DNA of 64,000 nucleotides, taken from the sequence record OK905446.1; one strand, written 5' to 3'. Of this stretch, positions 12,094 to 21,898 are shown piece by piece; within the stretch, counting starts at the first letter, position 1; each line of letters opens with the position of its first letter. The position numbers were made by a program, and so were the translations under genes. The notes under the pieces are model-generated. The model ran no database searches, was not told the DNA's origin, and was given only the letters and a program-made list of their open reading frames with translations.

Positions 12094-12425
12094 TACTTGT
12101 AAACAGTCATGGTAACTTGATGTGGGTGTACTTCTGTCACATCATCAAGCGTTGGCATGTCTAAATCCATGTCACGCGCTGAGTTATCACCAGTAATGTG
12201 ATAGTCAAACGTTTGGAAGTAACGCTCTGTTCCGTCGATGTCAACAGCATGTACAACAGAACGAATGTCATACCAACGATGCTCAGACTCGTTTTCTTCT
12301 TGTACAATTCGCTTGCTTAGACATTCAATGAACGTCTCATACATCGAATCAGGCTCGTTTGAATAACCGTGCTCGTCGTTGTACGCTTTTACTACGTCGT
12401 ATAGTGCTTGGCTCATTTCGCCCAC
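12093..12425 (-). CDS. hypothetical protein
   Basis: ORF track. Confidence 0.7.
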   Translation of the reverse strand: MGEMSQALYDVVKAYNDEHGYSNEPDSMYETFIECLSKRIVQEENESEHRWYDIRSVVHAVDIDGTERYFQTFDYHITGDNSARDMDLDMPTLDDVTEVHPHQVTMTVYK

Positions 12426-14380: not shown

Positions 14381-14667
14381 TGAGCACCACCGTTATAATG
14401 ATACGTCTCAAAGTGAATATCACCATTCGGCTGAACTTCGGCTCTGGCAAGCTGATACAGATCTTCACGCTCGTTTTCAAACGTTACACGGTAACAAAGA
14501 TCTTTGATAAAAACCAACCCGAACTCTTCTGAGTTTTCCCGTAGATATTCAAGCTTGGTCTCACACCAATACGGCAAGTCAGAATCACTTACTAGCTCTT
14601 CAGCAAGTTTATCCACAGACTTATCCACAAGATGTAGAATGCCTTTATTGTATTCCATTTGGCTCAT
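14350..14667 (-). CDS. hypothetical protein
   Basis: ORF track. Confidence 0.7.
   Translation of the reverse strand: MSQMEYNKGILHLVDKSVDKLAEELVSDSDLPYWCETKLEYLRENSEEFGLVFIKDLCYRVTFENEREDLYQLARAEVQPNGDIHFETYHYNGGAHWTEVVEGAL
14609..14629 (+). repeat. tandem pair of perfect DnaA boxes inside a CDS
   Basis: TTATCCACA-GAC-TTATCCACA. Confidence 0.5.
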
Positions 14668-18652: not shown

Positions 18653-19267
18653 TTACGAATGAAGTTCTTCGTCGTATTCGCTTACGGCAAACTTACCCAC
18701 TAGTAGATGATCACCACAGTCAGATACAATATTACCAGACGAACGCATATTGTCAATGTTGAAAGCAACCAATACACCATCACGCTCTACTACAATCTGT
18801 CCCGGACGACTCAACACTACAGTTGCATCAACTGGCGCTTCGGCATACTCATCGTCAGCGGCAAAAATGTCTACTATCTCACCAACCACTAGCTCGTGTT
18901 TCTCTTCTACGAAATCTTGCTCTTTATACTCATAGACAAGACGACCGCTTTTCCACTTACATGGATACCAATCCCAATCTTTCGCAGGCAAGGCTAATCG
19001 CGCATGTACCGCTACAAGCTGACCATCGTGCTTTTCACGTGTCTGCTTATCACCATTCACACGGTCTTTCTCTATGTTAAAGAATGCACCATCTTCAGTA
19101 ACAAGCATATATGTACCATCAGTAACACCACGAATTTGATGACTCGAATCAATGAAGTTCATATAACCACTCAACGAACGGTAATACGTCTCGATTCGCA
19201 CCATTGCTTGATCTGGCAATACTGCTTTCTTCTCTACTACTTTCTTGTGTAACTCAATACTAATCAT
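18653..19267 (-). CDS. hypothetical protein
   Basis: ORF track, start adjusted to TAATG-coupled MISIEL. Confidence 0.7.
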   Translation of the reverse strand: MISIELHKKVVEKKAVLPDQAMVRIETYYRSLSGYMNFIDSSHQIRGVTDGTYMLVTEDGAFFNIEKDRVNGDKQTREKHDGQLVAVHARLALPAKDWDWYPCKWKSGRLVYEYKEQDFVEEKHELVVGEIVDIFAADDEYAEAPVDATVVLSRPGQIVVERDGVLVAFNIDNMRSSGNIVSDCGDHLLVGKFAVSEYDEELHS

Positions 19268-19413
19268 TACCAATTTCCCGTAAACATCATCATACCACAG
19301 AACGCCACTATAATCATGGCTAAGTCTAAAATACACGTACCAAGATATAAATCACTTGGTCGCTCACTGTAACTCATGTCGCGGCTCATATAGAACAACG
19401 CTAATGTAATCAT
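19267..19413 (-). CDS. small membrane protein (48 aa)
   Basis: Read by hand: MITLALFY...FTGNW; GGAGGG SD. Confidence 0.6.
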   Translation of the reverse strand: MITLALFYMSRDMSYSERPSDLYLGTCILDLAMIIVAFCGMMMFTGNW

Positions 19414-19584
19414 ATCACCCTCCCAAGGTGGTTCAGTTGGCTTCTCATTCTCTCACAGGATGGAATTGCATGTCAAGCGAAAAGATGCGAAGCGGATTAG
19501 ATTTTCACGAGGCAAGTACCTTTCTCGACTGCATTAGACTACACAGGAGCCGATGAGACATCACCAAATTTTGACACCAAAAAC

Positions 19585-19692
19585 TTATCCACGTAATCCA
19601 CAGACTTATCCACACGAAAATCTGTATTTTATCCACAATTTTAATAACTTATGCACAGTTTTACACACATCTTATCCACAGATTTATGCACA
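19585..19692 (+). repeat. array of eight co-oriented DnaA-box 9-mers
   Basis: TTATCCACA x3, TTATGCACA x2, three one-mismatch boxes in a non-coding gap. Confidence 0.85.
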
Positions 19693-19803
19693 TTGTGTTT
19701 TAAACGAGGCATGGTGCGATATATTAAAAACGATGTGTATTGTACTATGCTCTGACACGCTCTGAATAGCTCTGTAAGCGTTTTAGAGTGTGTATATGAT
19801 GAA

Positions 19804-20025
19804 CTACACTACTGTTAGTTTAAAGCGTGCAGCGACGTAACTAGCGCGTTGATTGTCGTCGTTAGTAATACGAATCATAGGTGGTTTGTTTGTATGTTCG
19901 TTTACGTTATACATGTGGACGACGTATTCTTTGCCGAATGTCAAGCCGCTAGGTGGCGCAGGCAAGTCTATACGATGTGATTGATTGTCGATACAGATAG
20001 CTTTGATTATTTGTGTTTGTTTCAT
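19804..20025 (-). CDS. small SH3-like hypothetical protein
   Basis: ICID...LTFGKEYVV...YVAARF pattern. Confidence 0.65.
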   Translation of the reverse strand: MKQTQIIKAICIDNQSHRIDLPAPPSGLTFGKEYVVHMYNVNEHTNKPPMIRITNDDNQRASYVAARFKLTVV

Positions 20026-20363: not shown

Positions 20364-20567
20364 TCATAGCATTACTCCGTATTTGTGCATAACAAACATG
20401 TTAGCTACGTTAACGACAGCGCACACTACAAGGAAGATACACATGCCGGTGCGGTGTTCGTTGCTCATTAGGCTTTCAACTGAGTCAAACGCTAGAATCA
20501 CGACGAACACGAGTATTATAATAGATAGACCAATCATAATGTTTTCCTTACAGTTCAAAAACTTCAT
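20364..20567 (-). CDS. small membrane protein (start probably MIGLS)
   Basis: Two hydrophobic segments; AAGGA SD. Confidence 0.6.
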   Translation of the reverse strand: MKFLNCKENIMIGLSIIILVFVVILAFDSVESLMSNEHRTGMCIFLVVCAVVNVANMFVMHKYGVML

Positions 20568-20856: not shown

Positions 20857-21216
20857 TTAGTATAATTCATATGATTTGATATTGTTCATGTCGAACAGGT
20901 AGAAGTCTCTATTGCCACAGCCGTCATCGGCAACAGTTAGTAGCCATTGTTTATCAGCAGAAAGCCATACGCTTGTGCCGTATACTTCTACTGAGTAGCA
21001 ATCGCCTTCTTCTAAGCCATTCGCGTCTTTAAAGCCGTATTGGAACTCACGCACTTTGTTAATGACCTTATGCATATCATCTATGTTATCTGGTATTAAA
21101 TCGCACGTGAATAGTTCATCTGTGCAGTCTACAAGATTATGCCATAGATGGTCTAACTCGAACTTAGCTGCGATTGATGCTTCTGTTTCTGCTAATGTCT
21201 TTAGTAGTTCTTTCAT
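20857..21216 (-). CDS. acidic hypothetical protein
   Basis: Start adjusted to MKELLK (GAGG SD). Confidence 0.7.
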   Translation of the reverse strand: MKELLKTLAETEASIAAKFELDHLWHNLVDCTDELFTCDLIPDNIDDMHKVINKVREFQYGFKDANGLEEGDCYSVEVYGTSVWLSADKQWLLTVADDGCGNRDFYLFDMNNIKSYELY

Positions 21217-21898
21217 TGTATACCTCATGCAGTTGTGATACAAGTTGTTTAATTTGAAGTAACAGTACGTCATCGACATTTCCGTAGATGTCTTTACTCA
21301 TAAATGTTGCATGTTGCATTATGTATTGAGATTGCTGTTCGAATGACATCCGAGTATGCGACTTGTTGCTTAATTTACTGTTATCTCTATGTGTTATCAA
21401 TTGTAAATTGTCAGGGTGATGCGCAACTGCACCATGTTCGTGAATTGTAAGACAGTGGTCAACAACAATCTTGATCGAACGGTCTTCACTTAATTCTAGG
21501 AGCGTGTTGATTTCTTTTGAAATTCGCCAAAAATCTCTCAGACGATACATTTCGAGTTTAGTCAATTTCGATTCAGCGTCATTATAGATGCTCGCTCGAT
21601 CTTTACGCTTATTGACATTGCAATACCATTTTTTACCTCGAATTTCTTCAACGTGTAACGTATGATTCAAGCGTTTAATTGTTTCAGGTGCGCTCATGAT
21701 GCATGAAACACGATATGCAAGATGATGAACCCACGTCGGTCTATGTGACGTTAGCTTTTTAGTTGCGAATGCACGCTCAATTTGCGGATGTTTTTTAGCA
21801 ATCATTTCTGCCACATCGAAGCTACAGTATTCAATATCATAAGCAATGCTGTTCATTGCATCATACACATAATCTGATACATCTATCATGCTGTTCAT
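21164..21898 (-). CDS. HNH-family endonuclease (free-standing)
   Basis: IVVDHCLTIHEHGAVAHHPDNLQLITHRDN HNH motif. Confidence 0.7.
   Translation of the reverse strand: MNSMIDVSDYVYDAMNSIAYDIEYCSFDVAEMIAKKHPQIERAFATKKLTSHRPTWVHHLAYRVSCIMSAPETIKRLNHTLHVEEIRGKKWYCNVNKRKDRASIYNDAESKLTKLEMYRLRDFWRISKEINTLLELSEDRSIKIVVDHCLTIHEHGAVAHHPDNLQLITHRDNSKLSNKSHTRMSFEQQSQYIMQHATFMSKDIYGNVDDVLLLQIKQLVSQLHEVYNERTTKDISRNRSINRS

Follow-up and report, generated by a model that had tools for sequence, protein, structure and literature searches.

We find that the lytic T4-like Vibrio phage VS1 (OK905446.1; 248,270 bp; KVP40-like, Straboviridae) carries an array of eight co-oriented DnaA boxes in a non-coding gap, that the boxes are preserved site by site in three clades of two genera, and that they stand among other unique, conserved cis elements. 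The phage very probably recruits host DnaA to this site. We tentatively interpret the array as an accessory DnaA module of an early phage replication origin, a reading to which we assign a probability of roughly 0.35. Coordinates refer to the window, the whole stretch of 64,000 nucleotides that was analysed, in which position 1 corresponds to genome position 184,271.

A DnaA-box array far beyond chance

Re-scanning the window recovered the eight 9-mers that an initial sequence-only reading had listed, all on the plus strand and with its start spacings of 9, 12, 23, 20, 12, 11 and 12. The gap that holds them measures 390 bp (19414–19803) rather than the roughly 330 bp first given, with a minus-strand gene on either side. 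Its features and the adjoining genes, from left to right, are:

19267–19413, minus strand: first small ORF past the promoter, 48 aa; a PHROG model covers residues 9–48
19447–19476, minus strand: sigma-70-type early promoter, TTGACA-18-(TG)n-GAGAAT (TGnGAGAAT), reading leftward
19541–19557, no strand assigned: left-flank conserved block ACACAGGAGCCGATGAG, with CCGATGAG invariant
19585–19692, plus strand: array of co-oriented DnaA boxes, seven strong and one weak, matching TTATNCACA
19585, 19594, 19606, 19629, 19649, 19661 (weak), 19672 and 19684, all plus strand: starts of the individual boxes
19703–19730, no strand assigned: right-flank conserved block AACGAGGCATGGTGCGATATATTAAAAA, starting 10 bp past the last box
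19749–19785, no strand assigned: three GCTCTG copies with a 10-bp period (19749, 19759, 19769), then conserved TAAGCGTTTT
19804–20025, minus strand: upstream gene, 73 aa, whose stop codon opens the gap

Five boxes (19606, 19629, 19649, 19672 and 19684) fit TTATNCACA exactly and two have one mismatch (19585, TTATCCACG; 19594, TAATCCACA). The weak box at 19661, TTACACACA, differs from TTATCCACA at two positions, and its counterparts in relatives are TCATACACA or TCACCCACA. Three pairs (19594/19606, 19649/19661 and 19672/19684) are separated by a 3-bp gap, and the largest spacer within the array is 14 bp.

The cluster is far beyond chance. Strict boxes number 22 in the whole VS1 genome. Allowing up to one mismatch raises the count to 52, of which seven lie on one strand within 108 bp, while 200 simulated order-2 Markov genomes reached a maximum of one or two boxes per 120 bp, and three in one case. 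Motif density across the full genome thus marks the cluster as unique, at 7 boxes in 108 bp versus a simulated maximum of 3. Box groupings elsewhere in the genome never exceed pairs, in keeping with the initial description of isolated single boxes and one pair at 14609, although that description had overlooked reverse-strand singles at 20384, 48456 and 59793. The pair (14609/14621; window 14609–14629) comprises two perfect boxes 3 bp apart and has an 18-mer in common with the main array. We considered it as a second site and rejected it: it is coding sequence, part of the opening 20 codons (VDKSVDK) of a gene on the minus strand, and is missing in ValKK3 and nt-1, and is therefore probably incidental.

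The DNA of the array is itself unusual, being 68% AT with a stability in the lowest 0.5% of genome windows and a plus-strand GC skew of −0.54, in the lowest 0.016% of windows.

Conservation follows the specificity of DnaA

The gap is recognisable in all 31 of 31 KVP40-like records. Conservation in related phages had been named as a check on the array, and it held: three clades from two genera retain it box for box with the same spacing (9, 12, 23, 20 or 21, 12, 11, 12).

Clade 1: VS1, VS2, QD01
Clade 2: phi-ST2, ValKK3, VH7D, Va3, R10Z
Clade 3: nt-1, CZ01 (a different genus, Mylasvirus)

We aligned the gap from 12 phages and counted variable columns over the 8 array-bearing sequences of this alignment:

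Base-specific box positions (1–4 and 6–9): 5 of 64 columns variable
Box position 5: 4 of 8 columns variable
Spacers: 19 of 36 columns variable

Across these 8 sequences the specific positions differ strongly from the spacers (Fisher p≈9e-7), and because position 5 is the N of TTATNCACA, the constraint is shaped like DnaA's own specificity. In a comparison of VS1 with nt-1, identity is 80% in the array and 44–49% in the left flank, and no part of the gap is better conserved than the array. The spacers drift in sequence but keep their lengths, a pattern better explained by a phased DnaA oligomer than by independent titration sites.

A tblastn search with E. coli DnaA found homologues in 55 phage records and in no Vibrio phage; host DnaA is thus the likely ligand, and the sole identifiable one. 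(The records of two Campylobacter phages, A18a and A11a [MG065686.1, MG065691.1], contain a gene 99.8% identical to E. coli DnaA, which looks like contamination or mis-assembly.) That the 9-mers are DnaA boxes, as first proposed, is well supported by a conservation pattern equal to the DnaA-box information profile, and judged by sequence comparison they are very probably genuine DnaA sites under selection. We consider it likely that host DnaA binds the array, and the site-by-site preservation of the boxes makes its recruitment by the phage very probable. DnaA binding itself, like all of the replication roles considered below, is something we infer.

Single-copy conserved elements flank the array

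On the minus strand the right-flank block reads as an AT tract and then a GC-rich stretch, CGCACCATGCCTCGTT. It is nearly invariant in 12 of 12 aligned phages, the box-less KVP40 clade included, and is also present in the phage D480, which likewise has three 10-bp-phased GCTCTG copies. In KVP40 the block scans as a minus-strand sigma-70-like promoter, TTAATA-18-TAAAAT, aimed into the array; the promoter-like element has a poor −10 in exactly the array-bearing phages. The wider element at 19703–19785 (12290–12385 of locus L160 in D480) occurs in all clades and in D480 and is promoter-like in KVP40 and D480, and its "spacer" looks, from the alignment, too conserved for a promoter alone. Each flank motif (AACGAGGCATGGTGCGATATATTAAAAA, the GCTCTG repeats and ACACAGGAGCCGATGAG) is single-copy in the VS1 genome, which rules out a promoter class. 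Being single-copy and conserved even without boxes, the motifs indicate a special cis region and not an ordinary class of promoter.

On the other side, following the direction of transcription, the −35 of the early promoter comes 108 bp after the array, and the promoter element is identical in KVP40 and ValKK3. Along the minus strand the order is:

73-aa gene stop (19804); TAAGCG block and three CAGAGC repeats; AT tract, then CGCACCATGCCTCGTT
Eight TGTGNATAA boxes (19692 to 19585); CTCATCGGCTCCTGTGT; promoter (19476 to 19447)
Ribosome-binding site; 48-aa ORF; 227-aa ORF

We found no minus-strand intrinsic terminator after the 73-aa gene. The neighbouring proteins contain no Pfam domain, and their PHROG matches are only of unknown function. 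About 1.5 kb from the array, a 244-aa ORF (21164–21898, minus strand) weakly matches a PHROG for endonuclease VII (E=3e-7), contains an H-N-H-like motif and may encode a homing-type nuclease.

Two other kinds of function for the gap were considered and rejected. A protein-coding reading of the array fails: a plus-strand ORF from the left-flank ATG is open in the VS1 clade alone and stops after 8–21 codons elsewhere, so that the ATG is not a gene start. The plus-strand "hypothetical protein" QD01_174, annotated over the array in PV785814.1 (L002, 3862–4167), has a frame that is open just in VS1, VS2 and QD01 and closed in the other clades, and the annotation is therefore spurious. A structured RNA is likewise unsupported: Rfam gave no match in the gap, the right-flank stems predicted by RNAalifold showed zero compensatory changes and thus no evidence for structure, and the right-flank pairs are broken in nt-1.

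The surroundings of the array raise the possibility that bound DnaA acts on transcription of the early unit around it, as a roadblock or insulator against RNA polymerase that comes from the upstream genes or from the promoter-like right-flank element, or by modulating the conserved early promoter at 19476 from upstream. In both variants early expression would be tied to the host DnaA-ATP level, that is, to growth state. The flanking genes all lie on the minus strand without a minus-strand intrinsic terminator between them, in the KVP40 scan the right-flank element comes out as a promoter directed into the array, in D480 it directly precedes a gene, and a strong, conserved extended −10 promoter follows 108 bp beyond the array. 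DnaA is an established transcription factor and can block elongating polymerase, as reported in Messer's work on asnC and mioC. The array is, however, some 110–220 bp upstream of the −35, far for classical repression or activation, and its 7–8 phased boxes are many more than is usual at regulated promoters. The poor right-flank −10 in exactly the array-bearing phages and the single-copy flank motifs, unlike a promoter class, also speak against transcriptional control, which we regard as possible but rather unlikely.

The array is a separable module of the locus

In the KVP40 species group (KVP40, phi-pp2, PG216, VH1_2019 and PVA8) both flanks are kept, at 70–87% identity to VS1, while the centre is 49% identical and contains zero boxes with at most one mismatch to TTATCCACA. 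Remnants of boxes are visible there, for example TTACACACG and TTTTACACG, and a search for alternative iterons in KVP40 found no repeat family in place of the boxes. The more distant Vibrio phage D480 (254 kb) has neither the array nor the left flank and retains the right-flank element alone, directly preceding the next gene. Decay in the KVP40 clade, together with a D480 locus without boxes, shows the array to be separable and dispensable; by sequence comparison, the locus is a unique composite cis region with the DnaA array as one such module. Scans for the flank motifs in IMG/VR and metagenome contigs returned just KVP40 and VH7D, plus chance matches in coding DNA.

A possible early origin with an accessory DnaA module

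The sequence-only reading had suggested that the array might serve as a host-type or host-assisted early origin. The first form is not supported as such, as the locus has no conserved DnaA-trios, GATC sites, IHF site or skew switch and no clearly discrete unwinding element. The published definition of a DnaA-trio element requires three or more trios (NAN, consensus 3'-GAT-5') no further than 16 bp from a box (PMC8287927); past the final boxes of the array we found no conserved run of trios, the matches differing between clades and none being consensus-like. GATC occurs 0 times in the gap versus 1.1 expected, and the IHF consensus WATCAANNNNTTR is absent from it. Conserved A/T sequence is limited to one 12-bp tract (19720–19731), and the lowest stability is that of the array. 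No inflection of cumulative GC skew is seen at the locus. Skew inflections are rare in T4-type genomes, where skew follows transcription. A captured host origin was rejected as well: similarity to E. coli oriC stops at single boxes, and the scores fall within the shuffle range. Unlike oriC, the array has no adjacent dnaA- or gidA-type genes.

What the array does have in common with the left-half array of oriC and the basal unwinding system is geometry, namely co-oriented boxes with 2–3 bp gaps that support head-to-tail DnaA oligomers (PMC8287927). Tandem boxes no more than 3 bp apart belong to the bacterial unwinding module (PMC8287927), and two co-oriented boxes separated by 3 bp make up a canonical DnaA site of chromosomes: we found such a pair in more than 120 bacterial species across phyla, with dnaA at a median of 271 bp from the pair in 19 of 120 bacterial loci.

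The origins of T4 are without a common motif, and oriE among them depends on an early promoter and has iterons whose role is undefined (PMC3016281). T4 belongs to the same family as VS1, and oriE presents the same order on the transcribed strand, with repeats followed by a sigma-70-type extended −10 promoter and small ORFs (in oriE, six repeats, an early promoter and then repEA); a 12-nt repeat register is common to oriE and the VS1 array. The two differ in detail. The oriE repeats, GTTGAAGGTAAT, lie within the coding sequence of gene 5 and are not DnaA boxes, whereas the VS1 array is non-coding, and the distance from the repeats to the −35 is 108 bp in VS1 versus about 25 bp in oriE, where the repeats abut the promoter. 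A BLASTP search for RepEA and RepEB homologues downstream in VS1 gave no alignment even at E≤100.

DnaA-assisted origins of plasmids and temperate phages are represented by P1 oriR, RK2 oriV, F and pSC101. Like VS1, these place a DnaA-box cluster beside short phased repeats and an AT-rich tract, and their DnaA boxes are a host-factor module for another initiator. VS1 departs from them in having no identifiable Rep-type initiator gene nearby, only 2–3 copies of GCTCTG, and a T4-type replisome that works without DnaB or DnaC.

Taken as a phage-type origin with a DnaA accessory module, and not as an oriC-type origin, the host-assisted proposal is the best reading we have, if a tentative one. On this model host DnaA would load in cis at the array, which would supply the accessory, host-factor part of a larger control region. 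That region, present once in the genome and most likely an early origin, has several elements: the GCTCTG repeats, the AT tract and GC-rich block, the DnaA array, the early promoter and the small ORFs. ATP-DnaA would assemble head to tail on the 7–8 co-oriented, helically phased boxes, and this oligomer would either destabilise the array DNA, which is AT-rich and strongly skewed, or organise it. Phage helicase-loading machinery or a primer transcript could then start the first round of replication, and the extreme strand skew of the array may favour an R-loop with the minus-strand transcript. Analogous designs would be T4 oriE, or those plasmid and P1-type origins in which DnaA boxes assist another initiator.

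We favour the early-origin reading because of the filament geometry, the unique multi-element cis locus, and the parallel with oriE and plasmid origins. Counted against it are the loss of the array in the KVP40 clade and the fact that it was never seen in D480; T4-type origins are multiple and each dispensable, which fits the loss of boxes in KVP40. T4-type replisomes need neither DnaA nor DnaB, and consequently no route is known by which a DnaA complex would bring about the loading of gp41. The downstream ORFs are unlike RepEA and RepEB and have no known domains, and T5, which has similar boxes, has mapped origins elsewhere (10.1101/866236).

Possible titration of host DnaA

The other role suggested from the sequence was that of a sponge. 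As a decoy, amplified arrays would sequester or inactivate DnaA, halt host initiation and de-repress genes such as nrdAB. Chromosomes offer precedents in datA and the Bacillus box clusters; these, like DARS, are non-origin clusters that alter the amount or nucleotide state of free DnaA, and such elements need an IHF site, an opposed orientation of boxes, or both. We estimate that five consensus and two near-consensus boxes, multiplied by phage copy number, could rival the DnaA pool, and the array is dispensable in some lineages, as would be expected of an auxiliary host-takeover function. The VS1 array nevertheless differs from datA and DARS in that all boxes are co-oriented, spacers do not exceed 14 bp and the IHF consensus is missing, so that neither the IHF site nor the opposed boxes of the catalytic elements are present. 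Its spacer lengths are kept and its spacer sequences are not, a constraint that independent titration sites do not need, and the conserved spacing therefore argues against a simple decoy. The effect would also come late, when blocking host initiation brings little benefit, and KVP40-like phages encode nucleotide-metabolism genes of their own. T5-like phages destroy host DNA early, yet they retain very similar boxes. With its conserved spacing, the decayed boxes of the KVP40 clade and the similar boxes of T5, the simple sponge is the weaker of the two roles first suggested, and we think it improbable.

DnaA boxes in T5-like phages and other viruses

Heusterspreute reportedly described, in 1987, a set of DnaA boxes in the injection-stop region of T5-like phages. 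In 25 T5-like phages the injection-stop (iss) region has about eight conserved DnaA boxes, which invariably form pairs with 3 bp between the partners (Davison 2020, bioRxiv 10.1101/866236), and Davison proposes membrane-bound DnaA as the injection stop (10.1101/866236). A 2026 PNAS paper restates the description of these boxes. Our literature search found no paper linking KVP40-like or other T4-like phages to DnaA boxes. The feature thus appears undescribed within T4-like phages, as had been claimed, but this kind of element is not new in virulent phages, since the T5-like set, with its eight or so boxes and 3-bp-gap pairs, is a precedent.

The two cases agree in that a virulent phage carries about eight consensus or near-consensus boxes, with 3-bp-gap pairs, in a conserved untranslated region. 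They differ in arrangement. The T5 boxes form two inverted-repeat pairs (IRC/IRD) with 52-bp spacers, in the terminal repeat and a few kb from a fixed end, whereas those of VS1 form one co-oriented run of 108 bp in the interior of a permuted T4-type genome, beside other unique conserved motifs. Inverted repeats at the VS1 array are just weak, short ones.

By BLAST, the VS1 double-box unit matched 641 phage records, of which about 470 are T5-like, at 92–96% over 25 nt in hundreds of T5-like genomes. The matches are mostly T5-sized phages of Salmonella, Escherichia and Klebsiella, with Vibrio T5-likes included. In IMG/VR, more than 120 contigs carry at least three co-oriented boxes, in arrays of up to 13; among these loci (L035–L154; for example L089, L107 and L100) arrays of 6–13 boxes are frequent and many are fully co-oriented. 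A BLAST comparison of the large-array contigs with named phages was uninformative. DnaA-box arrays occur in small genomes too, as in the microvirus records PQ006258.1, MZ089785.1 and MK765623.1.

The T5 precedent suggests a role in DNA handling, in which membrane-associated DnaA would tether or pause incoming or packaged DNA, or in which the gap would be a pac or end region with DnaA as an accessory. The conservation of 3-bp-gap double boxes in the injection-stop region of T5-like phages, those of Vibrio included, speaks for it, and single-copy flank motifs would be expected of a pac site. Moreover, among the 31 KVP40-like assemblies, 7 that come from three or more laboratories have their start or end in this gap or no further than about 260 bp from it, a hint of a preferred genome end. 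These clustered ends, which lie at the equivalents of ~19488–19530 and ~19752 and at different bases (R10Z, L014; PVA8, L007; TCU_VP02_YC), could reflect a physical end, a nick or a break in coverage. PhageTerm classed one KVP40-like phage as "headful (pac)", although the paper gives no coordinate (PMC13373721). Against a role in DNA handling, T4-type genomes are circularly permuted, which leaves the array without a fixed place relative to the entering end; no published coordinate for a pac site is known; the role in T5 is itself a hypothesis; and the VS1 boxes are co-oriented, without the inverted repeats characteristic of T5. The breakpoints are also found in the box-less PVA8 and TCU_VP02_YC, and if real they are therefore tied to the flanks and not to the boxes. 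We judge this explanation distinctly unlikely.

Least likely of all, and by our estimate highly improbable, is that the repeats are iterons for a phage protein with a DnaA-like preference, or a neutral relic of captured host DNA: the majority of neighbouring genes are without known function and the iterons of T4 oriE are thought to serve a phage protein (PMC3016281), but the tolerated variation is exactly that of a DnaA box, where eight positions are fixed and position 5 alone is free, no Vibrio phage has a gene resembling DnaA domain IV, the KVP40 clade has no replacement repeat and thus no sign of co-evolving iterons, neutral DNA would not hold 80% identity beside a 44–49% flank, and similarity to E. 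coli oriC is limited to the boxes themselves.

Implications for virulent phages

Replication that dispenses with the host initiator is exemplified in textbooks by T4-type phages, whose origins, T4 itself aside, are poorly defined. Purifying selection of the DnaA type across two genera indicates that these phages use host DnaA for something. The question is confined to a single 400-bp locus and can be tested with ordinary tools; V. natriegens, a fast laboratory host, supports several of the phages, and the box-less KVP40 clade and D480 provide natural controls. T5-like phages also have DnaA boxes that lack an explanation, and this parallel hints at something more widespread among virulent phages. 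There is some chance, though we think it a small one, that a lytic T4-like clade with its own replisome has evolved DnaA dependence, with a phased filament that fires an early origin or licenses the early programme by DnaA-ATP state. If so, the double boxes of T5-like phages would be a sign of a general, unrecognised readout of host replication status by virulent phages.
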